A stretch of 64,000 nt of DNA from Malacoraja senta (Eukaryota). The stretch covers positions 1-64,000 of the forward strand of contig JAXLNO010004294.1 of the NCBI GenBank assembly GCA_038087875.1. The letters are read 5' to 3'. Position 1 is the first letter of the stretch. Every line of letters starts with the position of its first letter. Below, in pieces: positions 1-57,848 of this stretch. The notes under the pieces are model-generated. The model saw only the letters and a list, made by a program, of their open reading frames with translations, did not search any database and was not told the origin of the DNA. The position numbers were made by a program, and so were the translations under genes.

Positions 1-138
1 TTGGAAATGATCCAAAAGCATCTGTGGAAGTAAATAGAGTTGCAAACATTTTAGTTGCCAAATTAAATGATGAAGGTCTAGAATGTGAATTCAGATTTCC
101 CCTCCTTAAGTTTGAACTTTTCCTTGCTTTCTGGGTAT

Positions 139-410
139 TTAGTTTAATTTAGAGATACAGTGCAGAAACCTGTCCTTCAGCCCACTGAATCCTCGGCGAC
201 CAGCGATCCCCGCACACTATCACTATTGTATGCACGCTTGGGACAATTAGAATTTTACTAAGCCAATTGGTATGTCATTTGAATGTGGGAGGAATCCGGA
301 GCACCCGGAGGAAACCTGCGCCTGTCATGGGAAGTACGTACAAACTCCATGCAGAGATAAACCGTAGTCAGGATCAAACCCGGGTCCCTTGCGCTGTAAA
401 ACTACCGTGC
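139..410 (-). mobile_element. HE1-type V-SINE
   Basis: Reverse complement of the V-SINE consensus seen at 19847. Confidence 0.85.
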
Positions 411-1204
411 TCAACCATATTTTTAGCATTTCCTGCCAAATCCTAAACTGTATCAGAAGATGACTTCTCATGCAGTCTTGGTCTTATGCCATTTCAAATA
501 TTGTTTTGAAAATATTACTACAATGGTTTATGAATAATAGAAGTGACTTACTATACCAGTTAAAAATCATTGTGAAAAATGTAATTCCCTCCAAATTACA
601 TTCCCTTCTGTTGTGCAGCAAGTAAGAATTCATTGTCCTATCTGGGACATATGACAATAAAATACTCTTGACTCTTGAAGATGTGAGGAAGGGTCTCAAC
701 CTGAAATGTCACCTATTTCTTTTTGCCAGAAATGCTGCATGACCCACTGAGTTACACCAGCATTTTGTTTCTATCTTCGGTGTAAACCAGCATCTGCAGT
801 TCGTTCTTACAAAGATATACCTCTACCACCTGAGTTCCTACAGCAGTTGTTTTTATGATACTAGGTTGACATGCAATTGAGACATGCTGTGAGCTTCCTT
901 TCAAAGGAGGACAATTAAGCCCATATGCTCAATCCATGCACATTTTAACCAATGACGTATAGTAAAGCCTTAACAGTACAATTTACATTCAGCTTTCAGA
1001 TAATGCATTCGACCACAAACAGATGTCTATCTCATTAAATTCTACCAGATAAGGCTTGGAAAGTCTGAAAAGGGGTCTCGACCCGAAACGTCACCCATTC
1101 CTTATCTCCAGAGATGCTGCCTGTCCAGCTTTCTGTGTCTATCATTGAAAGACATTCTCCCTCCCCCACAATTCCTGCAGCTTAACATGCTTCTTTTTTT
1201 TCTC

Positions 1205-2080
1205 CTAGAAAAAGACACAAAGTGCTGGGGCAACTCGACGGGTCAGGCAGTATCATTGGAAAACATGGATATGTGGTGTTGTGGAACAGGATCCTTCTTC
1301 AGACTCATTGTGGGAGGTTGGGGGGGTGGTATGGGCATTGTAGAGGGGGAGGGGGTGGGGGAGATGAAGGAAACTGGATGAAAGGAGGGGCAGGTAATAG
1401 GTGAACATAGGTGAGGAGGCGGTAATGGGGGGAGTTGATAGGGAGATTATTGGACAAGGGCCAGAGATAAAATACAGAAGGTGTGCAACAAAATAATTGA
1501 AAAGTTGCAAATGGCAAATTTAGAAGGAAGGGGGTGAGGAGGGAACTAGGTGCAAGTCCAGGTGGGCTACAGGGGAGGGGGGCAACGGTGGGGAGAAATA
1601 TGGGTGTGGGGGAGAAAGGGGAGGAGGAGGAGAGTAGGGCTTAGGTTTCCTAAAATTGGCGAGTTCAATATTCACACCATCAGGTTGAAAGCTACCCAAG
1701 AAGAATATTAGGGGCTGTTTGCATGTGACCTCACACTGGCAATGGAGGAGACCCAAAACAGAAAGGTCAATATGGCAATGGGAAAGGAAGTTCAAGTGGT
1801 TAGCAACCAGGAGATCCAGAAGTCCATGGCAGATCCAGTGCATATTTTCGGCGAAATGGTCGTGGAGTCAATGCTTGGTCTCGTCGATATACAGGAGGCC
1901 ACATTGGGAACACCGGATGCAATAGATCAGTTTAGAGAAGGTGTACATGAACCTCTTGTCTCACCTAGAAGGACTGCCATGGTCCCTCGAGGCAGACCAC
2001 AGAGGAGGTACAGGAACAGATGTTACATCCGCAGTTGCAGGGGAGATTACCTGGGATGCGATGGTTTGGGTGGGAAGTGA
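1205..2080 (-). mobile_element. Penelope-like element 3' fragment (GIY-YIG region plus terminal repeat)
   Basis: Minus ORF 1520..1843 contains DLSVLGLLHCQ; terminal repeat ending TCTTCAGACT on +. Confidence 0.8.
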
Positions 2081-4059
2081 TGAGAATTTTAGGTAACCTA
2101 CCCCCATTTCTTCCCCTCCCCTGTGCCCCATCTGGACTTGCATCTATTTATGCCCTCCCCCGTCACCTTCATCCATTCCTCTATTCTCACAATTCACCAT
2201 TCTTTAATTCCTTTTTGTCTTTTTCATCTCTGTTCTTTGTTCAATCATTTGCCTGTCGGCAAATCCTCTCTGCAACATTTTAGTTTAGTTTATTGTTACG
2301 TGTACAGAGGTACAGTGAAAAGCTTTTGTTGCCTGCTAACCAGTCAGCGTAAAGACAATACATGATTACAAACTAACCATTTACAGTGTAGAGATACATG
2401 ATGAGGGAATACCATTTAGTGCAAGGTAAAGCCAGTAAAGTCCGATCAAAGAAAGTACGAGGGTCACCAATGATGCAGAAAGTAGTTCAGGACTGCTCTC
2501 TCATTTTGGTATCTATCACCTATCATCTGCCATACTTTGTTCTGCCCCTCCTCTCTTCCAGCTTTATTTACCCCCACAATCAGTTTGAAGAATGGTCCTG
2601 ACCCAAAACCTTAGCATCCCACGCTCTCCAGTAATGCTGTCCATCCCACTGAGTTATTCCAAAACTGTGTCTTTTTTTGTTAACCAGCATCTTCAGTTCC
2701 TCCTTTCTTCTTTCTCCTCCTTCCCAGTCCTGAAGGGTCTCTGGCCTGAAACATTAGCTCTGCTTTCCTGCCCACAGATGAGGCCTGACCTACTGCATAT
2801 TGCCAGTGTGTTCGGTATTTTACTAAAGTCAATTTTAATAATACTATTCCTGCATGCATTAATGAATTACTATCCTTTTCAACTATGTTCATGGTATGAA
2901 CATTTCAGCATTCAATTCTACCGTAAAAATATCATAAAAATACCAAACAACAGTGTTATTCAAACAAGTAGTTAATATCGAGACATGTTGGAATCTTGAG
3001 CAATGAAATACTGGAGGAACTCAGTGAGTCAGGGAGCATCTGTGGCTGGAATGGACAGGTAATGTTTTGAGTCAGGTCCCGTCTTCAGTAGTTTAAATAG
3101 TTTTGAATCTAGCTACTTGCAATAAATCAGTAATTTTAGTGGTTTTTATGGTTAGTTTAGAGTTACAGCGGAAACAGGCCCTTCGGCCCACTGAGTCCAT
3201 GCTGACCATTGATCTACCATTCACTCTAGTTATTCCACTTTCTCGTCCACTCTTTATACACTAGGGGCAATTTACATAGGCCAATTAACCTACAAAGCTG
3301 CATGCCTTTGGGTTGTGGGAGGAAACCGGAACACCTGGAGGAAACCCACAGTGAAAATGTGCAAACTCCACATAGACAGACCTGAAGTCAGGATTGAACC
3401 TGGGTCTCTGGCGCTATGAGGCAGCAACTCTCTCCCATTGCACCACTGTGCTGTACTTCACAAAACCCATTAGCCAGATCAACACACGTAAATGGCAAAA
3501 AAAAATCAAAGGAGCATTGGCGGCCATGGGTGCCTGTGTTATATGGAAAATAAATTGTGAGGAATAGGACTGATGAATGAAAGAATGATTGAATGATGCT
3601 CTATTGTCACATGTACCCAAGGTATATGTGTATAGTGAAATGCTTTGTTTTCCATACAACCTCGGTCTATCCTTGACCGGACTTTGCTGGCTTCACTTTG
3701 CACTAAACATTATTCCTTTTATCATTTGTCTCTACATTGTAAATGCATTGATTGTAATCATGTATTGTCTTTTTACTGACTGGTTAGTAAGCAACAAAAC
3801 GCTTTACACTGTACCTCGGTACACGTGACAATAAACTAAACTGAACCTAGGCTGTACAAAAATGTCGTCATGTGTTGGCGCAGACAAAGTTACAAAGTAC
3901 CGAACAGTCCTATCCACTGCCTGTTGCCGCACATGGCAGCAGACCCCATCCCCACCAGTTCCCCCTTCATTCTTGGTGGCGCCCCCACCCTCACAGTTCC
4001 CCATTTGTTCTCGTCCCCCTCAATGGGACAGCCTCTCTGTGCTGAATGATTTTGATTTG

Positions 4060-4850
4060 ATTTGATTTATTTCTTGTCATTTGAACCTCAAAGAGGCTCA
4101 AACAAAACTCTGTTTCCACAGCCATACAAAACAAACAATTCCTACAAGACACACAAACAATTCAATTTACAGAAAAACATCCATCACAGTGAATCTCCTC
4201 CTCACTGTGATGGAAGGCAAAGTCTTTTCTCTCCCTGCCCCATTTTTCTCCCGATGTTGAAGCCCCAGGCGGGCAATGTTAAGTCCCACGGCGTTGAGGC
4301 CGCGCCGGGGGCGGTATACAGCCTCGCTCCGGGCCCAAAAGTCACAAAGTTGGAGCCCCCCGGCGGGCGCTGGATTTACGCCCCGCTCCGGTCGTTCCAA
4401 CCCGCGACTCGAGCTGGAGAAGTTGCGTTGCGGAAGCTCCGGAAAGCGGTCTCTCACCCGGACCCGCGAACTCCCGATATCATAGTCCACAGGACTGCAG
4501 CTGGAGCTCCCGGAGTCGGGCCGCAGCAACGAGCCACCACCGCTCCCGCGCTCCGAGGCCGGCCAGCCCCACGATGGTGAGTCCGCAGCTCCACAGGCTC
4601 CACGACTGGAGCCCCAGGTCGTCCCGTCGGAGGCCGCTCCACGGAGCTAGGCCCCAACGACAACGGAGACCCGACAGGGAAAAGGTCGGGTCTCCCGTGC
4701 AGGGAAGAGATTTTTAAAGTTTCCCCCTCCCCCCACATATACACAATTAAAACAGTACAAAAAAAACACAAACAACTACATTTAACTAGACAAAATAAAA
4801 AAAAGACAGACGGGCTGTAGGGGCCGCTGCAGTAATCCGCGCCGCCGCAC
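4060..4850. repeat. Unclassified GC/CpG-rich interspersed repeat (relatives near 9350-9590, 35880-36420, 46930-47260)
   Basis: Shared motifs CATCCA(C/T)CACAG...CTCACTGTGATGGA(A)GGCAAA, GGAGCTCC and AAAGTTTCCCCC; ORFs here are low-complexity and GC-driven. Confidence 0.6.
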
Positions 4851-7800
4851 TCCGCCTGCCCTACGTCTACAATGTTCTAAGTATAAGATTAGATTAAGCA
4901 ATGCTCACTGTTGGACTTTGTACCTGCAAACCTTTATTACTTTGTTGGTCTCTTTGAATACAAACATTCTTGGGTGTTCTTGTCTGTACAAACTAAAATG
5001 TGTTGGTTTCTCTGTGACGTTTGAATTCGTGTATCATGCTCGCCAATCTTTTTTAGCAGATGCAGCATGGAAACAGGCCTTTCTGCCCACTGAGTCTTCA
5101 CTGACCATCAATCACCCATACACTAGTTCTATGTTTTCCCTGTTTCACATCCTACACACTCTGGCAATTTACAGCGGCCAATAAACCTACAAACACACAC
5201 GTCTTTGGAACGTGGGAGGAAACAATAGACAATAGACAATAGGTGCAGGAGTTGGCCATTTGGCCCTTCGAGCCAGCACCACCATTCAATGTGATCATGG
5301 CTGATCATCTCCAATCCAGTACCCCGTTCCTGCCTTCTCCCCATATCTCCTGACACCGTTATCTTTAAGAGGCCCATCTAGCTCTCTCTTGAAAGTATCC
5401 AGAGAACCTGCCTCCACTGCCCTCTGAGCACCCAGAGGAAGCCGAGCGGTCACAGGGAGAACGTATCAACTCCATACAAACAGAACCCATTGTTGGGATC
5501 CTTCTTGTGTCTGTGTAGGAAGGCACTGCAGATGCTGGTTTACACCAAAGATAGAGACAAAATACTGGAGTAACGCAGTGGAACAGGCAGCATCTATGGA
5601 TAAAAGGAATGTATCTTCTTGTACCCCACTCGTTATATATTAATTTATTGTAATTAGAGCAGTCTGCAAAACTCTCCCATAGATGAGAACAAGTGTTTAT
5701 GTGGATTGGCTACCATTAAACTCTAGTCCCCTGCAATGAAATGCAGATTTAGCATTTTACAGATCATTGCTTTGAGGGCCCCGTTTACAATGATATGTGC
5801 ATCCCATCATTTAGAATGCCCCTTCACCTACTCTTTCGAAGCATTCTCCACACATATAGTCACAGGGACACACAAACAGAACCATCAGCCGACAGTCCAC
5901 TCTGACCATGAAGCACTCATTCCATACCATTCCATCCCACCATTGATCTACAGGAGGTGCTGCCTCAGAAAGACAGCTAATATCATCAGAGACCCACACC
6001 ACCCTGGCCATACTCTCAGGGCCGGCCACCCTGGACCAGGAATTCGCCCGGAAGATCTGGCCCATCCATCATGGACCGAGTCTTGCTCGCTGTGGACCAA
6101 GGATGGAGGACCCACCTGGAAGGCCCAGCTCGCCCGCCCAGAGTGGAAGGAGTCAGATGGATGGCTTATAGGCAGACTGGCTGCGGGAGGGAATGGACTG
6201 CCTCAACAGTGGAGAGGGTGCTGGAGGCCCTGCAGCAGCCTGGGGCTTGGCTGTTCCAGGTGCTGTTCCAAGAGGCCGGGCACATGGACCAGTTGCACCC
6301 TGCAGCAGTAGAGGACACCACAGCTTCGATTGGCCAGGCCGACCCTGCAACACCAGGACAATGGGCCTCATGGTCAGGCCAAGAACCCTCACTTACACCT
6401 TGAGGGACTTGGAAATGGCACCATAAACTGGCGACACTGTATACTGTCTCAGCGTACTACTGCTATACACTTGTACTGTATCTGCGATGCTTATCTCAGA
6501 CGTATCTAAGGGCTTATATATAGCGATACCTGTGCTAAACTGTATACAATAATGAATTTCACTGTACCTCGGAACTTGCCACAAATAAAATACCGTTGAA
6601 CCAATCAACTGCCTCTGAGGTTAGAGAGCCTGAGAACTGTTAGCTCCAGGTTTAAGAGCAGCTTTTTTTCTCATGAGCAGCAGGCTTTTAAACACTGCAC
6701 AACACTAACCACAATCTTACCTCAACAACTCTGATTTGCAATAACTTTATTTTGGTTGCAGTAAGGACGTTTGTTTTTCCACTGTTATGGTCTGGTTACC
6801 TAGTATAACTAATATTAATTTATTTTACCATTGATTGTTGATATTTAATATGTGTATAAGAATGTCATTGTTCCATTGCCAGTACAGATGACAATTAAAC
6901 TCTTGCTCTTGACCAACCCATTCTTATTCTCTGCAAATTCCCATCATCTCTTTCCAGATTCTATCACTTACCTGCAAATGACAGTCAATTTACATTGAAG
7001 AAACAAGGAACTACAAATGTTGGTTCACAAAGAAAGAGACACAAAGTGCTGGAGCACCTTAGTGGGTCCGGCAGCATCCCTGGAGATCACGGATATGTGA
7101 TGATGGATAGAGGTTTCGGGTCAAGACCCCTTCTTCACTCTGTAGAAGGGTGTTTACCCTAAACGTCATCTAGCCACGTTCTCCGGAGATGCTGCCTGAC
7201 CAGCTGAGTTACTCCAGCACTTAGCGATAGACACAAAATGCTGGAATAACTCAGTGGGTCAGGCAGCATCTCTGGAGAATAGGAATGGGTGATGTAATCA
7301 GATTGAGGCCCTTCTTCAAACTTTGTCATCATTGTGCTAACTTGCTCCATCCCATTCACCCATCATCTTTCTGATTGAAAAATATTCAGATTTTAAACTC
7401 TGATCATTGTATTTCAATATCTAAGACCAACAGCTCTTTCATTCAAAGCAAATCTTTCAATCATTTGTTCTTATTATCTCTATATCACCCCCTGTATCTC
7501 TCATTTCCCTTTCCCCTGACTATCAGTCTGAAGAATCTCGACCTGAAACGCCACCTATTCCTTTTCTCCAGAGTCGCTGTCTGACCCGCTGAGTTACTCC
7601 AGCTTTTTGTGTCTATCTTCGGTTTAAACCAGCACCTGCAGTTCCTTCCTACGCAGCTCCTCCCTCGGCATGCATACAGTCCATACAAATTCACAGTTGA
7701 GGTTAGCGTTGTGTAGCGTTCAAGTGCATGATAGTTGTTGGGAAGAAGCTATTCTTGAACCTGGAGGTCATGGTTTTCAAACACCTATACTTTCCAACCC

Positions 7801-9189
7801 ATGGTGGGAGGTAATGAAAGCGTGGCCAGGGGGATGATGTTGGCTTCCTTTTTGAGGCAGCGTCTCGCGTGGATCCCTTCGATGGTGGTGAGGTCAGAAC
7901 CCACGAGACCGGGCAGTATAACTTCCTGATTATTCACAAATTTAAGTATTTCATCTGGAAGAGCAGGCCTAAGTCATAGAATTGCTCTCTAAATATCCCT
8001 TCCTTTAAGATGCACCTTAAATGTTTATTTTGCTAATTGTCATGTCATGCCATTATACTGCTCGAAGTAAAATGTTACAGAATAATATTCTTACGAATCT
8101 CATTGAAGCATTTTCCTACATTGGAACTGCTATAAATGTCATTCTTTATATCTAAGCCTGTTTCCCCATTCACCAAATTAGATTATTACCATCAAAGGAA
8201 ATGTCATTGTTTTGTTGGCTCTGGAGATGCGTGTTGGAATGTGATCATTAAAATGATGATTAATGAACAAAATAAAGACAAAGTGTTGGAGTAACTCAGC
8301 AGATCAGGCAGCATCGCTGGTGAGAATGGATAGGTAATGTGTCGAGTTGGACCCTGTAGACCTATGGACTGTCTTTGGTTAAACTAAGCATTTGCGGTGT
8401 ATTTGCACATGTATTGGGATTATCAATTAACTGGATTTTTAGTATGTTATCTATTTGTATTGTCTTACAGGTCTGCTAAGCTGCTACAAGAATGTCATTG
8501 TTTTGTAGTCAGCACATATGACAATTGAACATTCTATACTATCTTTCCTTCTGGACTCTCTTGTGGAGTGGGATCAAACCTAACATAAGCAAAATGTTGC
8601 CATTCATCCTTTGTTCCCAATCTCTGATATTCTATAAGATCATAACCGATCCTCTAGCAGACCACCATTTTTCCGTATTCTGGATTCCTTTTGTATCCAA
8701 GCATATTCCTATCCCTGCCTCAAGCATCTGATTGACTGAATGCCCACAGCCTTCTTGGACAGAGAATTTGAAAGACTAATTACCGTCTGGGTGAAAAGAT
8801 TTCATCTCATTACTGCACTGAATTCAATGATATTTTATTGTCACATGCACCTAGGTACAGTGAAATGCTTCGTTCCGTATACAACTCGGTATAATCATAT
8901 AGCAGACCTAACCTAGACAATACACAAGGGTCACCATGTTTTGGTGCCATAAGAATGTCTGAACCCTTATTTTTAAACTGTGAATTTTGGTTCCAGACAC
9001 ACCAGTCTGGGGAGAAATAAAAAGATCATCCCTCATGTTCTGAACTTTGACTCACTTCATAAGTCAAAGGTGCAGAATTTGGTTGTTCAGCCCATCGAGT
9101 TTACTCCACAATTTAATCATGGCTGACCTATCGTTACCTCTCAGTGCCGTTCTCCTGTCATCTCCCTGTGACCTTTGACACTCTTACAA

Positions 9190-10630
9190 ATCGGGCGGCA
9201 TTTTCTGTTTTTGTATTCCAGTCCTCTTGATATAAATCACCTTCCTGACTACCGATTCAATTTGCAAATTAACCTTTTGAGAGTCCTGCACCAACACTCC
9301 CATGTCACTGTGTGCCTCCGATTTCTGGATTCTCTCTCCATTTGTAAAATAATGAGATTAGAGATTCCTTTATTTGTCATTCAGACCTTTCGCTCTGAAC
9401 GAAATTTCGTTGCCTGCAGTCATACATATAATAATAAATAACAAAACACACAATAAACACAAATTAACATCCACCACAGTGAGTTCACCAGGCACCTCCT
9501 CACTGTGATGGAGGCAAAAGTCTTAAAGTCTCTGTCTCTTCCCTCCTTGTTCTCCCTCTGCGCTGAGGTGACCCAGGCTTCTGATGTTGTAATCTACGCC
9601 TTTATTCTTATTACCAAAATGCACGTCTCCACACTTTGCTATACTGGATTTCATCTGCCACTTCTCTGCCCACTCTCCTAACCTGTACACGTTCACATTA
9701 CAGGAGTAGAATTAGGCCATTCGGCCCATCGAGTCTACACCACCATTCCATTATGGCTGATCTGTGCCTCCTAATCCCATTTTCCTGCCTTCTCCCCATG
9801 ATAACCCGTTCTAATCAAGAATTTGTTGATCTCAGCCTTAACAATATCCACCAACTTGGCCTCCACAGCCCTCTGTGGCAATGAGTTCCACAGATTAACT
9901 ACCCTCTGACTAAAGAAATTCCTCCTCACCTCCTTTCTAAAAGAGCACCCTTTAATTCTGAGGCTATGACCTCTGGTCCTCGACTCACCCACCAGTGGAA
10001 ACATTCTTTCTACATCCACTCTATCTATGCCTTTCATTATTCTGTAAGTTTCAATTAGGTTCCCCCCTCAACCTTCTTACCTCCAGCGAGTAGGGGCCCA
10101 GTGCTGTCAAACGCTCATCATATGCTAACCCACTCATTCATGGAATTATTCTTGTAAACAACCTCCGAACCAGAGCCAGCACATCCTTCCTCAGATAGGG
10201 GGCCCAAATTTGCACACTGTACTCCAAACGTGGCCTGATCAGCGCTTTTGAAGCCTCAGAATGACATGTCTGTTTTTGTATTCCAGTCCTCTTGATATAA
10301 ATCACCTTCCTGACTATCGATTCAATTTGCAAATTAACCTTTTTGGGAGTCCTGCACCAACACTCCCATATCACTGTGTGCCTCCGATTTCTGGATTATC
10401 CCTCCATTTGTAAAATAATCTACGCCTTTATTCTTATTACCAAATGCATGTATCCCACACTTTGCTATACTGAATTTCATCTGCCACTTCTCTGCCCACT
10501 CTCCTAACCCGAACAAGTCCTTCTACAAAGTCCTTGCTTCCACTGCACTGCATGCCCCTCCACCTATTTTAGCATCATCTGCAAACTTGGCCACAAAACA
10601 TTCAATCCCCTTATCCAAATCACTACTAAA
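9190..10630 (-). mobile_element. CR1 LINE fragments with local duplication and nested insert
   Basis: ORFs 9771..10037 (ESRTRGHSLRIKG...NFFSQRVVNLWNSLP) and 10138..10374 (RPRLEYSVQIWAPYLRKD). Confidence 0.85.
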
Positions 10631-10789
10631 CAACATAAACGTGACGACGGCACGTTTGGAGCTAAGAGTTGTCACTCAATCAATAGCAAAATCCACAGTG
10701 TGTGCTAATCTTCTATTGATTTCGCATTGTACTAGTGCCTCACTATCTTCCCACATTTGGCCATAAACATGAACCTGTCAAACAATGCA

Positions 10790-11885
10790 CTTTGTGTAAG
10801 AAAGAACTGCAGATGCTGGTTTAACTCAAAGGTAGACACAAAATGCTGGAGTAACTCAGCAGGCAGGCAGCATCTCTGGAGAGAAGGAATGGGTGACCTA
10901 TCGGGTCGAGACCCTTCTTCAGACTGATGTCAGGGGAGTTGACAGGACAAAGATAGAATGTAGTTGAAGACATTAAGACTGGTGGGAGAACTGGGAAGGG
11001 GAGGGGATAGAGAGGGAACGCAAGGGCTATTTAAAGTTAGAGAAGTCAATGTTCATACAGCTGGGGTGTAAACTACCCAAGTGAAATATGAGGTGCTGTT
11101 CATCCAATTTGCACTAGGCCTCACTCTGACAATGGAGGAGGCCCAGGACAGAAAGGTCAGATTGTGAATGGGAGGGGAAGTTGAAGTGCTGAGCAACCAG
11201 GAGATCAGGTAGGTTAAGATGGACAGAGCGGAGTAGTTCAGTGAAATGATTGCCAAGCCTGTGCTTGGCCTCGCTGATGTAGAGAAGTTGGCTCCTGCAA
11301 CTGCAGATGCAGTAGATGAGGTTGGAGGAGGTGCAAGTGAACCTCTGCCTCACCTGGAAAGACTGTTTGGGTCCTTGGATGGAGTTGAGGGGAGAGGGAA
11401 AGGGACAGCTGTTGCATCTCCTGCGGTTACAGGGGAAAGTACCTGGGGAGGGGGTGGTTTGGGTGGAAAAGGACGATTTGATGAGGGAATTTCCGAGGGA
11501 ACGGTCTCCACGAAAAGCAGAAAAGGGGAGGAGATGGGAAGATGTGGCCAGTAGTGGGATCCCGTTGGAGTTGGCAAAAATGATGGAGGATTATATGCTG
11601 TATGCGACGGTGGAAGATGAGGACAAGGGGGACTCTGTCCTTGGTATGAATGGGGGGGGGGGGTAGGGAGAGCAAGAGCGGAGCATCGAGGAGACCCTAG
11701 TGAGTGCCTCATCTATAATGGAAGAAGGGAACCCCAGTTTCCTAAAGAATGAGGACATCTCCGATGCCCTGGAAAAGAAAACCTCATCCTGGGTGCAGAT
11801 GCTGCGTAGACAGAGGAAGTGGTAGTCGGGATAGAGTCTTTACAGGAAGCAGGGTGGGAAGAAGTGTAGTCCAGATAGCTATGGG
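10790..11885 (-). mobile_element. Penelope-like element 3' fragment (GIY-YIG endonuclease region plus terminal repeat)
   Basis: ORF 11114..11353: RQRFTCTSSNLIYCI...LLYISE...VAQHFN..SHSQSDLSVLGL. Confidence 0.88.
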
Positions 11886-11889
11886 AGTA

Positions 11890-12260
11890 TTGTATTGTAT
11901 TGTATTGTATACCTTTATTGTCATTTCCTGAGTATTCACATACCCAGAGGAAACAAAAAAACGTTCCTCAACCAGTGTCCATTTCAGTGTGCAGTAAAAA
12001 ATAAATAGAAGTAAAAATACATATATCATGAACAAATTAACACTCTACTCTCTACTAAACATCAACAGGCGTTCCGATCGGCAGCGGCACAACAGTGGCT
12101 CTGCTACAGTGTGTCCAGGTTGGTGGTTGGTGCACGATATTTTGGCAGGGGGGCAAAGTCCGTTTATCAGTCTTATAACCTGCGGGAAGAAGCTGAGGAG
12201 CATCCTGCTGGTTTTGCACCTAATGCTCCGGTACCTCTTCCCAGATGGCAGGATGGAGAA
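11890..12260 (-). mobile_element. Rex1/Babar LINE 3' end
   Basis: ORF 12045..12371 has SHHIFSILPSGKRYRSIRCKTSRMLLSFFPQVIRL. Confidence 0.8.
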
Positions 12261-12910
12261 TATGTGATGCGATGGCTGGTAGGTTTGTAGTAGATGTTGG
12301 TCAATAGTATGTTTCCTGTTATGGAGATGGTGAGATCTAGAAACGGTAGGGAGATGTCGGAGATGGTCCAATTGAATTGGAGTGCAGGATGGAAATTGGT
12401 GGTGAGGTTGATGAAGTCAGTGAGTGCTGCATGGGTGCAGGAAGTAGCACCAATGCAGTCGTCAATGTAGCGGAGGTAGAGTTCGGGGATCGGGCCAGTG
12501 TACCTCTGGAACAGTGATTGTTCGACGTTCCCTACAAAGAGGCAGGCACAGCCCTTTCACGCCTCTCCCACATCGTATTCCCATTCTTACAATTACAACT
12601 TGAAATCAAAGATGTTTTTGTTTCAAACCGCGTCGCTCCTGTTTGTTTTACACGAGTTAAAATCAGTTTAAACCAATATCTGTAGTTCCTTCTTCCACAA
12701 AGGAAACGGGGCATTGTGCAAATCAAAGCAGAAATTCCATCTGGATTGTACTGAAACAGTGGAGATTAAACCCTTTTAACGTCCGCATGAACCATGAACC
12801 AGATTGAATGTGTATTGCGCGCTTGTTTAAACTCAGTCGCCTCCGGTCAAGATTGAGATAAAGCCAAGACGCTTTTAGCCAGTAACGAATAAAATGAGTC
12901 ATTAACTTAC

Positions 12911-12962
12911 CTGCTTGAGCCCCTTGTACGCGGAAGATACTCAACAAGATGAACAGAATCAT
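12911..12962 (-). CDS. Leader exon of a second, probably class I-like gene (MILFILLSIFRVQGAQA)
   Basis: ATG at 12962, 17 codons + G, donor gtaagt. Same 52-nt length and phase as the gene 1 leader, with pattern M.LF.LL....V. Confidence 0.75.
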
Positions 12963-13036
12963 TTCACGCACAACCACTCGCATCAACAGCAGCAACTGAG
13001 CCAAACTTCACCAACATCAAAGCAGGATCTCATCAT

Positions 13037-13079
13037 GCAATCAGAATAAAAATACCACGGGTCGTCACCAGTTGTCGAG
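13037..13079 (-). promoter_or_regulatory. X1-X2-Y module upstream of the second leader exon
   Basis: Minus strand CTCGACAACTGG-TGACG (13067-13063), 21 nt, then ATTGC (13041-13037, in CTGATTGC). Same spacing as gene 1. Confidence 0.65.
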
Positions 13080-13602
13080 CGATGTCATTGAACCAGCAGG
13101 AAACAATTGACTGTAATGGAGACATGAGGAGGTGCTGATGCCGATTTACAACAACAAAAGACACAAAGCGCTGGAGTAACTCAACGGGTCGAGCAGCATC
13201 TTTGGAGAAAACGGATAGGTGACTATTGTCAGTCTGAAGTAGGGTCGCAATCTGAAACAGCGCCTGTCAATGTCCTCCAGAGATGTTGCCCGACCTGCTG
13301 AGTTACTCCAGCACTTTGTTTTTTTCGCACTCTATAGCAAATGGAATGGAAAGGCAGGGCGTAGTTGCCTGGAACTGTAATTACGTTTCAGATAACACTC
13401 CATTCTTGTGCTGCTAACTGCTCCTTATGTTATGATTCAAGAGACCCATAAATCCAATGCCTATGCTGACTTGAATCATTACAATGCAGAACAAAAAGGA
13501 GGAAACCATACACTGTACACAGCAGGTAGAGCTGCTGCCTCACAGCACCAGAGACCAGCGTTAGATCCTCACCTCTGGTATTGTCTATGTAGATTTTCTT
13601 TA

Positions 13603-21918: not shown

Positions 21919-23533
21919 CAGTGGCTTGCAAAAGTATTCATACCCCTTGAACTTTTCCACATTTTGTCACGTTACAACCACAAACGTAAATGTATTTTAT
22001 TGGGATTTTATGTGATAGACCAACACAAAGTGGCGCATAATTGTGAAGTGGAAGGAAAATGATACATGGTTTTCAAATTTTTTTACAAATAAAAAACTGA
22101 AAAGTGTGGCGTGCAAAAGTATTCAGCCCCCCTGAGTCAATACTTTGTGGAACCAGCTTTCGCTGCAATTACAGCTGCAAGTCTTTTGGGGTATGTCTCT
22201 ACCAGCTTTGCACATCTAGAGACTGAAATTTTTGCCCATTCTTCTTTGCAAAATAGCTCAAGCTCAGTCAGATTGGATGGAGAGCGTCTGTGAACAGCAA
22301 TTTTCAAGTCTTGTCAGAGATTCTCAATTGGATTTAGGTCTGGACTTGGACTGGGCCATTCTAACACATGAATATGCTTTGATCTAAACCATTCCATTGT
22401 AGCTCTGGCTGTATGTTTAGGGTCGTTGTCCTGCTGGAAGGTGAACCTCCGCCCCAGTCTCAAGTCTTTTGCAGACTCTAACAGGTTTTCTTCCAAGATT
22501 GCCCTGTATTTGGCTCCATCCATCTTCCCATCAACTCTGACCAGCTTCCCTGTCCCTGCTGAAGAAAAGCATCCCCACAGCATGATGCTGCCACCACCAT
22601 GTTTCACAGTGGGGATGGTGTGTTCAGGGTAATGTGCAGTGTTAGTTTTCCACCACACAACGTTTTGCATTTAGGCCAAAGACTTCAATTTTGGTCTCAT
22701 CTGACCAGATCACCTTCCTCCACATGTTTGCTGTGTCCCCCACATGGCTTGTGGCAAACTGCAAACGGGACTTCTTATGGCTTTTTTTCAACAATGGCTT
22801 TCTTCTTGCCACTCTTCCATAAAGGCCCGATTTGTGGAGTGCACGACTAATAGTTGTCCTGTGGACAGATTCTCCCACCTGAGCTGTGGATCTCTGCAGC
22901 TCCTCCAGAGTTACCATGGGCCTCTTGGCTGCTTCTCTGATCAATGCTCTCCTTGCCCGGCCTGTCAGTTTAGGTGGACGGCCATGTCTTGGTAGGTTTG
23001 CAGTTGTGCCATACTCTTTCCATTTTCGGATGATGGATTGAACAGTGCTCCGTGAGATGTTCAAAGCTTGGGATAGTTTTCTATAACCTAACCCTGCTTT
23101 AAACTTCTCCACAGCTTTATCCCTGAACTGTCTGGTGTGTTCCTTGGGCTTCATGATGCTGTTTGTTCACAAATGTTCTCTAACAAACCTCTGAGGCCTT
23201 CACAGAACAGCTGTATTTATACTGAGATTAGATTACACACAAGTGGACTCGATTTACTAATTAGGTTACTTCTGAAGGCAATTGGTTGCACTGGATTTTA
23301 TTTAGGAGTATCAGAGTAAAGGGGGCTGAATACTTTTGCACGGCACACTTTTCAGTTTTTTATTTGTAAAAAAATTTGAAAACCATGTATCATTTTCCTT
23401 CCACTTCACAATTATGCACCACTTTGTGTTGGTCTATCACATAAAATGCCAATAACATACATTTACGTTTGTGGTTGTAACGTGAAATAATGTGGAAAAG
23501 TTCAAGGGGTATGAATACTTTTGCAAGCCACTG
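21919..23533 (-). mobile_element. Tc1 (DD34E, IR/DR, Passport-like) transposon, full length (1615 bp), transposase with one frameshift and one nonsense codon
   Basis: TA flanks at 21917-18 and 23534-35; about 210-bp TIRs beginning CAGTGGCTTGCAAAAGTATTC. ORFs 22642..23154 and 22314..22670 give MKPKEH...WSDETK...QQDNDP...NPIENL*. Confidence 0.97.
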
Positions 23534-41059: not shown

Positions 41060-41110
41060 TCACCTTGTCTTCACAGCTGGAATAGAAAGTTCAGGCAAAT
41101 CATACACCTC
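41060..41110 (-). CDS. Class I-like gene 1, probable exon 6 (cytoplasmic tail EVYDLPELSIPAVKTR*)
   Basis: Strong acceptor tttattttccag, phase 0 matching the TM donor, ends in TGA at 41062-41060. Short exon in unique sequence, so less certain. Confidence 0.65.
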   Translation of the reverse strand, partial: EVYDLPELSIPAVKTR

Positions 41111-41544
41111 CTGGAAAATAAATCTTCTTCGTAACTATTTTAAAGAGGGACCCAACATGGGAGGACTGCCGAGAACAAAGATAACAAAGAGGGTCCCGGG
41201 GTTGGGGGGGGAGGGGGCGCGGATAACACAGGTGAACCCAACATGGAGGGGCTGCCGAGAACAAAGAGGGACCATTGGGGACTGTAATGATTACTTTGTA
41301 ACTGTGTCGACACCCTATACATGGTGACTTGTGTATGTATACCTTGTGTATGTTATGCAAAGCAAAGAATTTCACTGTGACATGTCACATGTGATAATAA
41401 AGTATCAATCAATCAAATAGGCGACCTTTTATTCCAAAATGTGGCGCAATGTATGACTTTGGAATCACAGGGTAACTGCAGTGAAGACAGCATTTGAAAA
41501 ATTAATGGCTGAATGTAAAGTCATCAGTCAGCATTGATACAATA

Positions 41545-42030
41545 AAGAGCATAGAACAGTACAGCACAAGAACAGGCCCTTTGACCCACAATGTTTGTGC
41601 CGAACATGATGCCAAGACCAATTGTTATCTGCTTGCACATAATCCATATCCATCCATTCCCTGCATATACATGTGCCTATCTAAAAGTCTCTTAAATGCC
41701 ACTATCATATCTGCTTCCACCACCACCTCCAGCAGCACATTCCAGTCACTCACCACCCTTGGCGTAAAACACTTGTCCTGCACATCTTTTTTTAACTTTG
41801 CCACTCATTGTAAAGCAATACCTGCTCTTATTTGATATTTCCTTCCTGGGTAAAAAGTCTGATGGTCTACCCTATCTCTACTCCTCCCAGTTTGATATAT
41901 TACTGTCAGGTCTCCCCTCAATCCCCGACATTCCAGAGAAAACAATCCAACTGTCCAGTCTGTCCAACTTCTCCCTGTGGCTAATACCCCACTAATCCAG
42001 GCATCATTCCGGTAGACCTCCTCTGCATCC
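41545..42030 (+). mobile_element. CR1 3' remnant in the TM-cytoplasmic intron (CR1 sense on - strand)
   Basis: Starts with a CR1 tail complement (CATAGAACAGTACAGCACAAGAACAGGCCCTT) and matches other antisense CR1 3' ends in the window. Confidence 0.7.
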
Positions 42031-42090
42031 CAAAGGAAGCTGATTGTGCTTCATGGTCCTCTCCTGGTCTCTGCTGTTGTCAGCTGGTAC

Positions 42091-42224
42091 CTGTTCATTG
42101 AAAGGTTTTCTCTTTTTCCTCTTCTTCCAGCAACCAATTCCAAGGATGATCCCCAGGAGAATGAGAGGAACAATTACAGCTCCAGTCACGATCCTAATCT
42201 TCATATCTTCTTTCACTGCCCTCT
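42091..42224 (-). CDS. Class I-like gene 1, exon 5 (connecting peptide, transmembrane helix, basic stop-transfer)
   Basis: Acceptor caacag, phase 1 matches alpha3 donor. (E)RAVKEDMKIRIVTGAVIVPLILLGIILGIGCWKKRKKRKPFNEQ, then donor gtacca (phase 0). Within ORF 42004..42279. Confidence 0.85.
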
Positions 42225-42237
42225 CTGTTGGCATATA

Positions 42238-44215
42238 CAGTGGCTTGCAAAAGTATTCATACCCCTTGAACTTTTCCACATTTTGTCACGTTACAACCAC
42301 AAGCGTAAATGTATTTTATTGGGATTTTATGTGATAGACCAACATAAAGTGGCACATAATTGTGAAGTGGAAGGAAAATTATACATGGTTTTCAAATTTT
42401 TTTACAAATAAAAAACTGAAAAGTGTCGCGTGCGAAAATATTCAGCCCCCTTTACTCTGATACCCCTAAATAAAATCCAGTGCAACCAATTGCCTTCAGA
42501 AGTCACCTTATTAGTAAATAGAGTCCACTTGTGTGTAATCTCGGGACGACAGATGGCGCAATGGGCTAAGTGTTCGGCTGGCAACCGGAAGGTAGCCGGT
42601 TCGAATCCCGCTTGGAGTGCATACTGTCGTTGTGTCCTTGGGCAAGACACTTCACCCACCTTTGCCTGCGTGTGAATGTGTGTGAATGTGTGTGAGTGAT
42701 TGGTGGTGGTCGGAGGGGCGGTAGGCGCAGATTAGCAGCCACGCTTCCGTCAGTCTGCCCCAGGGCAGCTGTGGCTACAGAAGTAGCTCACCACCACCGA
42801 GTGTGACTGAGGAGTGAATGAATAATGCGATGTAAAGCGCCGAGTATTAGAAAGGCGCTATATAAATCCCATCCATTATTATTATTATTATTATTAATCT
42901 AATCTCAGTATAAATACAGCTGTTCTGTGAAGGCCTCAGAGGTTTGTTAGAGAACATTAGTGAACAAACAACATCATGAAGCCAAAGGAACACACCAGAC
43001 AGGTCAGGGATAAAGTTGTGGAGAAGTTTAAAACAGGGTTAGGTTATAAATAAATATCCCAAGCTTTGAACATCTCACGGAGCACTGTTCAATCCATCAT
43101 CCGAAAATGGAAAGAGTATGGCACAACTGCAAACCTACCAAGACATGGCCGTCCACCTAAACTGACAGGCCGGGCAAGGAGAGCATTGATCAGAGAAGCA
43201 GCCAAGAGGCCCATGGTAACTCTGGAGGAGCTGCAGAGATCCACAGCTCAGGTGGGAGAATCTGTCCACAGGAAAACTATTAGTCGTGCACTCCACAAAT
43301 CGGGCCTTTATGGAAGAGTGGCAAGAAGAAAGCCATTGTTGAAAAAAGCCCATAAGAAGTCCCGTTTGCAGTTTGCCACAAGCCATGTGGGGGACACAGC
43401 AAACATGTGGAGGAAGGTGCTCTGGTCAGATGAGACCAAAATTGAAGTTTTTGGCCTAAATGCAAAACGCTATGTGTGGCGGAAACCTAACACTGCACAT
43501 CACCCTGAACACACCATCCCCACTGTGAAACATGGTGGTGGCAGCATTATGCTGTGGGGATGCTTTTCTTCAGCAGGGACAGGGAAGCTGGTCAGAGTTG
43601 ATGGGGGAAGATGGATGGAGCCAAATACAGGGCAATCTTGGAAGAAAACCTGTTAGAGTCTGCAAAAGACTTGAGACCGGGGCGGAAGTTCACCTTCCAG
43701 CAGGACAACGACCCTAAACATACAGCCAGAGCTACAATGGAATGGTTTAGATCAAAGCGTATTCATGTGTTAGAATGGCCCAGTCAAAGTCCAGACCTAA
43801 ATCCAATTGAGAATCTCTGGCAAGACTTGAAAATTGCTGTTCACAGATGCTCTCCATCCAATCTGACTGAGCTTGAGCTATTTTGCAAAGAAGAATGGGC
43901 AAAAATTTCAGTCTCTAGATGTGCAAAGCTGGTAGAGATATACCCCAAAAGACTTGCAGCTGTAATTGCAGCAAAAGGTGGTTCTACAAAGTATTGACTC
44001 AGGGGGGCTGAATACTTTTGCACGCGACACTTTTCAGTTTTTTATTTGTAACAAAATTTGAAAACCATGTATCATTTTCCTTCCACTTCTCAATTATGCA
44101 CCACTTTGTGTTGGTCTATCACATAAAATCCCAATAAAATACATTTACGTTTGTGGTTGTAACGTGACAAAATGTGGAAAAGTTCAAGGGGTATGAAAAC
44201 TTTTGCAAGCCACTG
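42238..44215 (+). mobile_element. Tc1 (Passport-like) transposon, second copy, with nested SINE
   Basis: TA flanks at 42236-37 and 44216-17, same TIRs. ATG at about 42976, early TAA, +1 frameshift near 43605, ORFs 43066..43656 and 43611..43997; 34 residues between the D of QQD and the E of PIE. Confidence 0.97.
42542..42894 (+). mobile_element. tRNA-derived SINE with CORE-like segment, L2-type 3' end and (TTA)n tail; AFC-like
   Basis: A/B boxes (TGGCGCAATGG; GGTTCGAATCCC), GTTGTGTCCTTGGGCAAGACACTT, TGTAAAGCGC...AAAGGCGCTATATAAAT, TTA repeats. TSD taatct at 42536-41 and 42895-900; absent from the Tc1 copy at 21919. Confidence 0.9.
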
Positions 44216-45363
44216 TATAGTGCATTTTAAACATTTAGTGATCAATAACAACATTGTAATGATTTTATTATCTAAATTAAAGTAGCACTGTTCATATCTA
44301 ATTAAAAAGTAATAACGTTTTAGATTTAAGTATTTATACAGAGGATGGATGTGCTTAAAATGATCAATGAAAAATCATTAAGTTCATATTAGCATTGAGG
44401 TATTGAGATTTTATCTGCAGCATTTAATTAAGAATTTAAAGAATCAAGTACGTCAGAAATATATGACTATTTACAGTGTAGAGGTCAACAAGGCCATTTT
44501 CTTATGTTGATTGTTATTATAGCAAATAAAAGTGAACCCATTTATAGTTGATAAAACTTCAAAGGTTTTAATCTTTGCTGATATTTCAATGATATCTGAG
44601 TTTAATTTTCTCACATACACATGCTCTCTCTTTCTCTCTCTCTCCCCCTCACTGTCTCACACACATGAGCCCACACACACACACACACACATAGGCACAC
44701 ACAGACATTAACACTACTGTCTATTTGTACTGACCAGCAATCTTAACCATGTCAGCTTGGCCCTGGTGTGAAGATCTTTGCAGAGGTCTTGTCTGGAACA
44801 AATAAGTCAGCTACAGAACAGGTGCTGCTACTTCAGCCTGATAATATGGCACCACTATTGGTCTTTTGTGTAACTAGCTACTATCAGAAAATTAGCTAGA
44901 TGCCCAAGGAAGAAGATAAGAGACCTTGTCCAGGATCAGCCTATCTTGCTTCCACTGTTCCTACATTTGGATGGGTGAGTTAAGGGTGACATAAGAATAA
45001 TTTTGACCATAAGATATTGGAGCGGAATTATGCCTTTCAAGTCCATTGAGTCTACTCCACCATTCAGTCATAGCAGATCTATTTTTTACCGCTAAATCCC
45101 ATTCTCTAGCCTTCTCCCTGTAACCTTTGTCACCCGTACTCATCAAGAACCTATCAATCTCTGCTTGAAAAATATGCAATGACTTGACCCACACAGCTGT
45201 TTGTATCAATGAATTCCACAGATTCACCACCCTGTGACTAAAGAGATTCCTCCTCATCTCCATATTGAAGGTAGGTATTTTTATTGTGAGGCTGTGCTAG
45301 ACTCTCCCATTACTGAAAACTTCCTTTCCCATCAACTAACCAGGCATTTCATTATCTGGTAGG

Positions 45364-47156
45364 CAGGGCCGGATTTACATATAAGATGGACAAGCTTCAG
45401 TTTAGGGCCTGGAGATCTAGGAGGGGCTCGCAGAGCCGGATTTACCACTAGGCTTCATAGGCTGAAGCCTGGGGCCCTGAAATATAGGGGGCCTCCGGCC
45501 AAGGCAGGACACCAGCCGTTCAACTCTGGGCGGGGCGGCCCCCCTCTCTATCTCTATCTCCGTCTGTCACTCTCCGTGTCCGGGTCTCCGTTCTCCGCTC
45601 GCTCCTCATCCGCCAGCACGGCCGGCCGCCTTGCACATGCACACTGCTACGGCCAGCACGTCCTCCCCTGCACATGCGCACAACCACAGCCCGCACGTCA
45701 TCGGCCGCCCTGCGCATGCGCACTGCCACGGCAACTGGTCGGCGCTGGGCACTTTCTCCCTCGCTTTGAATTGTGGGAGATTTGGCCGCCATTGCTGCCT
45801 TGCCGCAACCGCTGAAAACTAACACAGAATCACTCCCTGACCCTGGATCAGGAGTATCTCCCTGGAGTAACTCTCGCTTCTGGTTTCCTGATCCTCCATA
45901 AATATTCTAAAAGGAATTTAAACTGGAGGTGGTAGAGGGCTGAACAATAACAGCCTATTGCATTTTATCTGTTTATTTATTGTGTATATATATGGTCTAT
46001 GGTATATAAACACACTGAACTTTTATCTCCTGTTCTGTATTATGTTCACATATTATGTTGTGCTGCAGCAAGCAAGAATTTCATTGTCCTATCTGGGACA
46101 CATGACAATAAAACTCTCTTGACTCTTGACTTGGACTTAAGCAAAAAAGGGTTCTTGGGGAAAAAAGAGGTACCTTAAATTTAGTTGCGTCTGGTTGGGT
46201 AACTATGGTAGGGTGAAGACTATTCCATGCTTTAATTGTGCGGGGGAACTCCATGGAGCAGCCAGCAACTCAGGATAGAAGAAATTGGGTGACGTTTCGG
46301 GTAGAAACACTTCTTTAGACTCCCTCTGGTTTTAGTGTCTTTAGCTTAATTTGAAGATACAGTGTGGAAACAGGCCCTTCAGCCCTCCGAGTCCACGCCG
46401 ACTATTGATCACCCGTACACTAGTTCTTTCCCACACATTAGCGAAGTAAGTCAAGAGTCAAGAGTTTATTCTCTCACGTCCCAGTTAGAACAATGAAATC
46501 CTTACTTGCAGCAGCACAACAGAATATGTAAACATAGTACTCTGTAAACAATGTTATAAACGAGAAAACAAAACGGTGTTTATTTATAGCTGTGGTGGAG
46601 ACAATCGCTGCTGCTACCCGACCCCCGGAGATTCGGAGGCTACAACCGCGGGTCTGGCGGACGGCAACACCGGAAGCCCGTGGGTCCCCTGGTGGGACAC
46701 CGCTTTTCGGGGCATCCGCAGCGGCGACTTCTCCCGCCCGAGTTGCGGGGTTGAAGAGCACCTGGAGGGGGGCTTTACATCACCGCCCCGCGCGGCTTGG
46801 AATGGCCGCCGGACTTTGCGAGCGCGCGCCGGGGCTCTAACACCAAGACGCGGTGCGCGACCCTGCATTAACCGGCGTGGCTTTAATGGCCGCGGGATAA
46901 TCACCATCGCCCGCCGGGGGCTTTGACTTTGACTCTGACATCGGGGGGGTGGGGGGGGGGGAGTGCAGTGGAGAGATACGTTTTTTTGCCTTCCATCACA
47001 GCGCTGTGATGGATGTATGTGTAAATTGTGTTGTGTCTCGGGTCTTCTTCGTTTTGTAATGTATGGCTGCAGAAACGACATTTCGTTTGGACCTCAACGG
47101 GGTCCAAATGACAAATTTGTCCAAAAGACAAATAAAATTGTATTGTAATTGTATTG

Positions 47157-47188
<32 letters not shown>

Positions 47189-48885
47189 CATAGTATATAT
47201 ACCCACACGCACACACACACAATTTCCCTCCTGGGATTAATAAAGTTCTATCGTATAGTATCGTGTGTGTAGGAAGGAACTGCAGATGCTGGTTTAAACT
47301 GAAGATAGACACACAAAGCTGGAGTAACTCAACAGGTCAGACAGAATCTCTGGACAAAAGGGAAATATTACGTTTAGGGTTGGTTCTGAAATAGGTTCCT
47401 GCACACCTTTGGAATGTGGAAGGAAACAAGAGCACCCGAAGAAAACCCATGCGATCAAAGTGAAAAGGAGCAAACTCCAAACAGACAACACCCATATTCA
47501 GGATCAATTCCAGGTCTCTGGCACTTTTAGGCAGCAACCTTATGGCCAATGTACAGCCCCATTGTCTTGAACTTAATTAAAACGCCAAGTGTAGCATTTC
47601 CTGCAGTCGCAATGGAAAGTGCCAGGAGAGGGGGTGGTTTGGGTGGGAAGGGACGAATTGACCAGGGAGTTACGGAGGGAGCGGTCTCTATGGAAAGCCA
47701 ACAGGGGAGGAGATGGGAAGATGTGGCCAGTTGTGGGATCCCATTGGTAGACAAAAAAGCTGTAGAAAATCAGCGGGTGAGGCAGCACCTGTGGAGCGAA
47801 GGAATAGACGATGTTTCGGGTCGAGACCCTTCTTCAGATTGATGTCGGGGGGGGGGGGGGAATGACATGAAAAATAAAGGAAGAGACGGAGACAGTAGGC
47901 TGTGGGAGAGCTGGGAATGGGAGGGGAAGGAGGGAGAAAGCAAGGACTACCTGAAATTAGAGAAGCCTATGTGCATAGCGCTGGGGTGTAAACTACCCAA
48001 GCAAATATGAGGTGCTGCCCCTCCAATATGCGGTGGGCCTCACTCTGGCCATGGAGGAGGCCCAGGACAGAAAGGTCAGATTCGGAATGGGAGGGGGAGT
48101 TGAAGTGCTGAGCCACCGGGAGATCAGGTTGGTTATTGCGAACTGAGTGGAGGTGTTGTGCGAAGCAATCGCCAAGCCTGCACTTGGTCTCACCGAGGTT
48201 GATCATACGCTGAATAATCCAACCACATTTTTTTTTGGAAGTGGAAAGAAATAATAGAAATTGCATTCATTGCAACGTGTAAAAAGAGTTAAGATACAGT
48301 ATTATAATTGTGCTGCATGTCATTGTGGTATATATCATGTCCTGATTGGTGAATATGTTTAGTTTGTGGCTTTATTTGAAGCAGAAATAATATGTGAATG
48401 CTTCATTGAGCATAATTCTGACTGGTCGTGTGAGCACATTATCGCACGTGTCATGCAAGCCATCTTAAATAACCACCTAAACTGTCATTTGGCAACTTAA
48501 AAAGCTACCAAGGTTGCCCGGCTGACAACAGAGAAAAAAAATTAAGTGAGAGCCCTGCAAGGTGTATAATATTTTTGACACTGTCATAGGCCTTTCTTAC
48601 ATATGCTGTCACAACGCACTGTAGTCTCTAAACAACACTTCAGTAATTTTCCTTGCCCTCCATTTCAGAATAATAGTGTTTTAAGCCAATAACTCGACAC
48701 TAGCAGTGGCAATAAATAAATAAATAAAGCCCAGCTTTCCAGCCCCTTATCTCATTGGCCACGCTCGGCTGCAAATCGGTGTCAATCTGGTGGACCATCT
48801 TCCTCTGGTCGTGGGGGTGGGGGATTGGGGGGGGGCCTCACAAGTGGAACAGCTTAGGGCCTCTCTTCATCTAAATCCGGCCCTG
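45364..48885. mobile_element. Non-autonomous hAT-type DNA transposon with nested insertions
   Basis: 14-bp TIR CAGGGCCGGATTTA / TAAATCCGGCCCTG; exact 8-bp TSD CTGGTAGG at 45356-63 and 48886-93; splits a CR1 fragment; no transposase ORF seen. Confidence 0.92.
47575..48200 (-). mobile_element. Rearranged Penelope-like fragments nested inside the hAT element
   Basis: ORF 47967..48266 contains GETKCRLGDCFAQHL...VAQHFNSPSHSESDLSVLGLL. Confidence 0.8.
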
Positions 48886-49339
48886 CTGGTAGGTTTCAAT
48901 GAGATTCCCACCTCATCCTTCTAAATCCCATGAGCACAGGCACAGAGACTTCAAACACTCCTCATACGTTAAATCAATCATCCCCAGGACATACATCCTC
49001 TCGACCCTCTCCAAAGCCAGCACATCCTTTCTAATATGGAGCCCAAAACTGCTCACAATATTCCAAATGTGTCTTCACCAGTGCCCGATAAATCCTCAGC
49101 ATTATATCATTGTTTTTATATTCTACGCCCCCCGAAATGAATGCTGGCATTGCATTTGCCTTACTTACCACTGACTCAATCTGCAAATGAACTATTTGGG
49201 AATCCTGCACTAGTACTCCCACTTTGTAGCTCAGGTTTCTCAATTCTCTCCCCATTTAGAAAATAGTCTATGTCTTTATTCCGACTGCCAAAATGTAAAA
49301 CCAGACACTTGCTACACTGTATTCCATTTGGCTCTGCTT

Positions 49340-49985
49340 TGCCCACTCGGTGGAACTGCTGCCTTACAGCGCCAGAGACCCGGTTCAATTCTGACTACGG
49401 GTCCCGTCTGTACAGAGTTTTGTACCTTCTCCCCGGGACTTGCGTGGGTTTTGCCTGGATCTCCGGTTTCCTCACTCAGTCCAAAGACATACAGGTTTGT
49501 AGGTTAATTGGCTTGGTATTATTGTAAATTGTCCCCTAATAAGTAAGATAATGTAAGTGTGCAGGGATCGCTGGTTGACGCAGACTCGGTGGGCTGAAGG
49601 GCCGGTTTCTGCGCTGTATCTCTTAAACTAAAACCACATTCCATTGACTATCAATAATTATGAGCAATTAGATAACCACAAATTAATAATGGGTGGCACA
49701 GTGGCGTAGCGGTAGAGCTGCTGCCTTACTGCACCAGAGACCTGGGTTTGATCCTGACTACAGGTGCTGTCTGCAAGGACATTGTATGTTCTCCCTGTGA
49801 CTGCGTGGGTTTCCTCCCACACTACAAAGACATACAGGTTTGTAGGTTACTTGGCTTAGGTAAAATTGTAAATTGTCCGTACTGTGTAGGTTAGTGTAAA
49901 TGTATGGGTTGATCACTATTCAGCGAGGACTCAGTGAGCTGAGGGGCCTGTATCTGCAGCATATCTCTAAAGCCTAAAGTCTAAA
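49340..49985 (+). mobile_element. Two tandem HE1-type V-SINEs just downstream of the alpha3 exon
   Basis: Copies at about 49340-49635 and 49691-49985. Confidence 0.85.
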
Positions 49986-50079
49986 TCCACAGCTTAGTTA
50001 AGAGTGTGAGTTGAGACTGTTATCTCAGTCCAGGAGGTTTATGGTCTCAAGTGATCAGCCTCATTGACTTGCCACTTAC

Positions 50080-57827: not shown

Positions 57828-57848
57828 GTTTAACAGCCGCCCACAGCA

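Follow-up and report, generated by a model that had tools for sequence, protein, structure and literature searches.

The leader exon and its surroundings

The window (the whole 64,000-nucleotide stretch of DNA analysed) carries a disabled class I gene, gene 1, on its minus strand and, about 28 kb downstream of it on the same strand, a leader exon preceded by a block of promoter-like motifs, which we read as the probable start of a second gene. The features are listed below in their order along the minus strand.

41060-58009, minus strand: gene 1, a disabled UGA-sister class I gene, with its leader at 57827-57777
13127-13325, no strand assigned: palindromic short repeat at the edge of the unique promoter stretch, with dozens of copies in the window
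13084-13094, minus strand: GGTTCAATGAC, reading TCAAT in place of a forward CCAAT box present in the other three skates (GGTCCAATGAC) about 45 nt upstream of the Y-like box
13062-13079, minus strand: X1-like CTCGACAACTGG (13079-13068) and X2-like TGACGA, a CRE half-site (13067-13062); 20/22 between sawfish and thorny skate
13037-13054, minus strand: T-rich TATTTTTATT and Y-like CTGATTGC (13044-13037), with the core ATTGC and not ATTGG; 16/18 to sawfish
12984-13036, minus strand: 5' leader region with a 17-codon upstream ORF (ATGATG...TGA), the stop of which overlaps the ATG at 12983 as TGATG
12963-12983, minus strand: MRVVVRE, an in-frame upstream extension and the start in the RefSeq orthologue models of thorny and little skate
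12911-12962, minus strand: coding exon 1, MILFILLSIFRVQGAQA plus the first base of the next codon (phase 1); ATG conserved across batoids
12905-12910, minus strand: intron 1 splice donor GTAAGT in the perfect context CAG/GTAAGT; GGTAAGT invariant in 6/6 aligned loci
1-12904, minus strand: intron 1 over its first 12.9 kb, made up largely of transposon remains and collinear with thorny-skate intron 1

The coding exon reads on the minus strand from an ATG at 12962 to 12912 (MILFILLSIFRVQGAQA), with an extra G at 12911 that sets the intron in phase 1. The first-pass annotation had described a 52-nt phase-1 leader followed by a GTAAGT donor, and this description proved exact on the minus strand. 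A second in-frame ATG lies at 12983, 21 nt above the first, and yields the longer peptide MRVVVREMILFILLSIFRVQGAQAG (MRVVVREMILF...) from 73 nt of coding sequence. The exon was compared in an alignment of the window with thorny skate, two little-skate loci, longtail skate (Rhinoraja longicauda) and sawfish (Pristis pectinata). The ATG at 12983 is present in the window, thorny skate and little skate only and is absent in longtail skate and sawfish, whereas the ATG at 12962 is kept in thorny, little and longtail skate and in sawfish (all of the batoids compared). The leader start noted earlier, at 12962, is the conserved one, although the RefSeq models of the thorny- and little-skate orthologues begin at the equivalent of 12983. 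From either ATG a plausible signal peptide ending AQA/G is predicted, and exon 1 codes for the signal peptide alone.

Both strands of the 64-kb window were scanned for exons with an ATG, an open frame of 14-28 codons, a hydrophobic core, small residues at -1 and -3 and a phase-1 GTRAGT donor. A single exon was returned, the leader at 12911 with its two possible ATGs. When the window was simulated 100 times with a Markov model, the same scan found on average 0.05 exons per window, a chance test that is only indicative because the criteria were chosen after the case had been seen. The exon sits within 424 bp (12703-13126) that are single-copy within the window and have repeats on both sides, namely the palindromic repeat at one edge and another repeat fragment at the other. 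Copies of the palindromic, MITE-like repeat abound in the window (e.g., 7224-7322, 55410-55916, 63362-63622), and one directly adjoins the control block.

Homology, collinearity and the long first intron

A search of 1.8 billion protein representatives, with the gene 1 alpha1 exon as query, led to a little-skate (Leucoraja erinacea) protein, XP_055521884.1 (P0013), with the N-terminus MREVVREMILFILLSFFHVQGALAG. The window peptide read from the ATG at 12983 is identical to this N-terminus at 21 of 25 residues (84%), as it is to those of P0156 and P0157, and similar N-terminal matches were obtained for thorny-skate XP_032898133.1 and little-skate XP_055521885.1 and XP_055486429.1. Besides the thorny-skate (Amblyraja radiata) protein XP_032898133.1, the 90% cluster of P0013 contains three proteins derived from transcripts and two further little-skate models; each begins with this N-terminus and continues into a class I alpha1 domain. 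P0013 is itself a full class I chain; its top match among solved structures is 9ch4_A (E 2e-114), with the next, a beta-2-microglobulin/MHC class I-related protein fusion (4lcc_C, 6e-48), far behind.

In public records these proteins are named 'class I histocompatibility antigen, F10 alpha chain-like'; the UGA label used here follows a review (PMC12562908), in which UGA and UFA are listed as class I genes of sharks and rays that are CD1-like and linked to the MHC. A literature search on PDB 9CH4/8GM8 or a CD1-like elasmobranch structure returned no paper linking 9ch4 to UGA, just a review citing a personal communication. In sharks and rays UGA is the lineage of CD1-like, non-classical MHC class I genes, and the window gene would belong to it.

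At the DNA level, window positions 12703-13126 align with the exon-1 regions of thorny skate (89.6% identity over 415 nt) and little skate (88%). The similarity extends far beyond the exon, since window 1-20202 is collinear, in reverse, with positions 30366 to 73 of the thorny-skate locus (L002), a span that begins about 10 kb upstream of exon 1, runs through 20 kb into intron 1 and is unbroken to the edge of the window. Judged from these sequence comparisons, the minus-strand stretch 12911-13079 very probably comprises exon 1 of a skate UGA-lineage class I gene together with its proximal control region. The orphan exon would be accounted for as the beginning of a second class I gene in a CD1-like lineage that is already known. 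The tandem class I paralogue proposed in the first-pass annotation holds as far as a second same-strand class I gene is concerned, by homology, collinearity and tandem order, but the paralogue type is not new: the gene is a further member of a lineage already annotated in other skates.

No class I exon was recognised on the minus strand of 1-12910, either among stop-to-stop ORFs or by tblastn with four skate class I proteins, and the ORFs present there were transposon ORFs only, in agreement with the earlier statement that no alpha1 exon is recognisable in 1-12900. The distance from exon 1 to alpha1 is 31.8 kb in thorny skate and 18.1 kb and 21.9 kb on two little-skate contigs. With a skate intron 1 of 18-32 kb, the absence of alpha1 from 1-12910 is to be expected and is no sign of truncation; the gene looks truncated because skate UGA first introns are very long. 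Of the two possibilities raised at the outset, an intron 1 of more than 12.9 kb or a gene cut short within the window, the orthologous introns of 18-32 kb and the 20-kb collinearity support the former and put the predicted alpha1 exon about 7-12 kb to the left of the window. The window exon would then splice in phase 1, at 12911/12910, to an alpha1 exon outside the window.

The same evidence bears on the alternative that best survives, a solitary relic in which exon 1 and its promoter were left behind by a partial duplication or deletion, with the rest of the gene absent downstream. Such a relic would fit with the sight of exon 1 alone, with the disabled state of the adjacent gene 1 and with TCAAT in place of the skate CCAAT, a change found in this copy only. 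However, the collinearity with thorny-skate intron 1 continues to the window edge, 20 kb into an intron of 31.8 kb, with no break, and the ORF, ATG and donor are undamaged. We consider a relic improbable and keep to the reading of the exon as the start of a UGA gene with a long first intron.

Splicing of the orthologous exon was seen directly in little skate: in three RNA contigs (from SRR11241640, SRR13269358 and SRR13269316) exon 1 is followed at once by alpha1, with the junction precisely at the conserved donor. We infer that the window copy is spliced like its little-skate orthologue. Two sequencing runs were found to contain the stretch 7401-13400; their contigs were 100-280 nt long and of even depth, including over intergenic DNA, and none was spliced. 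One of these contigs passes unspliced through the donor, and as the contigs resemble genomic DNA they have no bearing on splicing. A search of runs with the exon only returned several organisms with 20-50% of the words, no run with all of them and no RNA run with the exon.

With the homology and the transcripts in hand, two further explanations of the exon lose nearly all of their probability. X-Y modules and phase-1 leader exons occur in class II chain and beta-2-microglobulin genes as well, and class II Y regions are similar to the CTGATTG with T-rich spacer found here, so that the exon might be the first of some other X-Y-promoter gene with a phase-1 leader, for example a class II chain or beta-2-microglobulin. 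The homology and 20-kb collinearity are, however, with the UGA class I loci of two skates, whose mRNA carries this exon in front of a class I alpha1 exon. A leader of the class II or beta-2-microglobulin kind is thereby refuted, and we give this explanation almost no credence. Equally negligible is a chance ORF next to a chance GT, with no exon at all: signal-peptide-like ORFs are short and the scan criteria were set post hoc, but the peptide is 84% identical to annotated N-termini, the DNA is 88-90% identical to exon 1 of three loci within a collinear region, the orthologous exon is spliced in mRNA contigs and 0.05 such exons were expected per window, which together refute it.

The conserved X1/X2/Y-like block

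The second part of the region is the motif block upstream of the exon. In the window, TGACG (13067-13063) is followed after 21 nt by ATTGC, and gene 1 carries TGACG-N21-ATTGG at 57996-57966. The pattern TGACG-N21-ATTGS occurs twice in the window, each time just upstream of a leader, where 0.08 occurrences would be expected; relaxed at its last base and sought in 450 kb of related loci, it was found at two UGA promoters and at two unrelated places. The earlier observation that the leader is preceded by an X1-like box, TGACG and a 21-nt spacer, with the same spacing as in gene 1, was confirmed (13079-13037 compared to 57996-57966).

Between sawfish and thorny skate, 20 of 22 positions are identical in the X1-like box with TGACGA and 16 of 18 in TATTTTxATTCTGATxG (blocks of 89-91%), compared to 27% identity in the upstream flank, 55% in the 5'UTR and 74% in the coding leader. 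On this alignment the block of about 40 bp is a clear phylogenetic footprint among batoids and the best-conserved part of the region, and it offers a lead on a possible MHC-type enhanceosome control of a CD1-like gene; it is the only point of the locus that is new, and only mildly so. TGACGA, which adjoins the X1-like box, is invariant in 6/6 batoid loci. The X1-like CTCGACAACTGG is likewise conserved, and its GACAAC is one base off the RFX half-site, RGYAAC. The Y-like box is more variable. Sawfish has a canonical Y box, CTGATTGG, and is the sole aligned locus with ATTGG, whereas the core is ATTGT in thorny and little skate, ATCGC in longtail skate and ATTGC in the window, which is not an inverted CCAAT. 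A spacer of 21 nt separates TGACG from ATTG in the window as in gene 1, thorny skate and sawfish; the little-skate spacer is one nucleotide shorter (20 nt). An S box lies about 16 bp upstream of X in an SXY module; none was recognised upstream of the X1-like box in the window, where the sequence reads TCAAT and that of the other skates CCAAT. In zebra shark the promoter contains GGACGA and, at a distance, an ATTGG, but it did not align with the batoid block.

The SXY (S-X1-X2-Y) enhanceosome module of MHC class I and II promoters (as defined in PMC7281430) is the known system that the block most resembles, in that an X1-like box abuts TGACG and is followed by a Y-like CTGATTG with a 21-nt gap between TGACG and ATTG. 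The X and Y boxes of mouse class I genes stand 20-22 bp apart (PMC4374748), in agreement with the 21 nt of the window, though the box edges were possibly counted otherwise. The likeness is not complete: the Y core of the window is ATTGC, no S box was recognised, X1 is one base off, the little-skate spacing is 20 nt and, finally, the block is contained in two mRNA contigs, while the SXY modules of NLRC5 targets sit upstream of the transcription start (PMC4374748). By analogy with the MHC module, the X1-like/TGACG/T-rich/CTGATTG block would bind RFX-, CREB/ATF- and NF-Y-type factors.

The two transcripts concerned are little-skate mRNA contigs. One of them (L005) begins directly after TGACGA, and the other (L010) spans the whole conserved block and continues into the orthologous upstream palindromic repeat; both are assembled contigs, the ends of which do not map a transcription start. 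The 17-codon upstream ORF of the 5' leader region (window 12983-13036, minus strand) encodes the peptide MMRSCFDVGEVWLSCCC, its frame and stop are the same by eye in the thorny-skate and little-skate alignment rows, and it would belong to the mRNA if transcription begins at the start of L005.

Since the Y core is not CCAAT, the little-skate spacing is 20 nt and the block lies within mRNA contigs, its role as an upstream promoter is that of a candidate only. The claim that the exon has its own X-Y promoter is therefore borne out in one part, the block being real and strongly conserved, and weakened in the other by these same three points.

A more far-reaching combined interpretation is that the block is a true SXY-type enhanceosome site on a CD1-like, probably lipid-presenting lineage, that the CCAAT of the skate Y box has decayed and been replaced, and that the window copy has been silenced; taken together this is speculative and in our view rather doubtful. 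If it were true, peptide-type class I genes and CD1-like ones would share control by RFX, CREB and NF-Y in cartilaginous fish, and in skates a new CCAAT, about 45 nt upstream, would have taken the place of the one in the Y box. As the window copy is without both CCAATs, it would, under this combined interpretation, be a silenced member of an expanding UGA/UGA-sister pair.

Gene 1, tandem order and status of the window copy

The disabled state of gene 1 is visible in two of its exons. In the alpha2 exon (51468-51907, minus strand) the reading frame flips between two frames and hits a stop, and in alpha3 the first half is not open in the frame of the second half. Gene 1 resembles the window UGA copy in its strand, in a 17-residue leader of similar pattern (MLLFTLL compared to MILFILL) with a phase-1 donor, and in the upstream GTGACGA-N20-ATTG, although its Y box is canonical (ATTGG) and its intron 1 measures 3.9 kb compared to more than 12.9 kb in the UGA copy. 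DNA similarity between the two was seen only in those motifs, and the alpha1 domains of the UGA and UGA-sister lineages are just ~40-47% identical.

The gene 1 region is collinear with the UGA-sister gene of little skate. On contig JAMYXN010000384.1 that gene and UGA share a strand, with the sister gene 42 kb upstream. This equal tandem order upholds the proposal of a same-strand class I cluster that includes gene 1. The UGA-sister/UGA pair is a conserved unit and as such an aid for annotating this unannotated skate genome. Two near-identical sets of Tc1/mariner-type transposase ORFs were also observed in the window, at 22314-23154 (minus strand) and 43066-43997 (plus strand), one of which lies between the two class I genes.

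The window copy is like the skate UGA genes (XP_032898133.1, XP_055521885.1, XP_055486429.1 and longtail-skate XP_078272153.1 with its paralogues) in exon 1, donor and upstream block, and shares with them the long first intron and the place downstream of a UGA-sister gene. It differs from them by four changed leader residues, by TCAAT for CCAAT and by a 3-nt deletion in the 5'UTR; the bases behind V3, I16 and Q23 of the 25-residue leader are among those specific to this copy. With the thorny-skate locus, as with each of the two in little skate, the window locus shares 88-89% identity, compared to ~95% among those three, and at several sites the window copy has the state of longtail skate and sawfish. 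On these comparisons the copy would be an older duplicate, or else the orthologous gene of a third skate that is more distant.

Divergence in the coding part (~11%) is at the neutral level of the flanks, with 4 of 25 residues different from the thorny- and little-skate genes, while the ORF, ATG and donor of the window exon are all intact. Given that gene 1 is broken and that exon 1 alone of the second gene is visible in the window, the chances that the window copy as a whole is intact and works, as the functional sister suggested earlier, are about even.

UGA has been described as single- or low-copy (PMC12562908). Ten distinct UGA-type proteins (XP_078272016 to XP_078272546, in the cluster of P0164) are encoded on longtail-skate chromosome CM130181.1 (41.5 Mb), which suggests that the UGA lineage has expanded in skates. 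The two little-skate loci, L001 (JAMYXN010000384.1) and L004 (JAMYXN010000161.1), are 95.7% identical over 20 kb, as far apart from each other as either is from thorny skate, and may be old duplicates or very divergent haplotypes. Finally, three RefSeq isoforms of L004 (P0152, P0153 and P0155) fuse a UGA class I chain to a GPR139-like 7TM receptor, which indicates that a GPR139-like gene lies downstream of UGA and was joined to it by read-through models.
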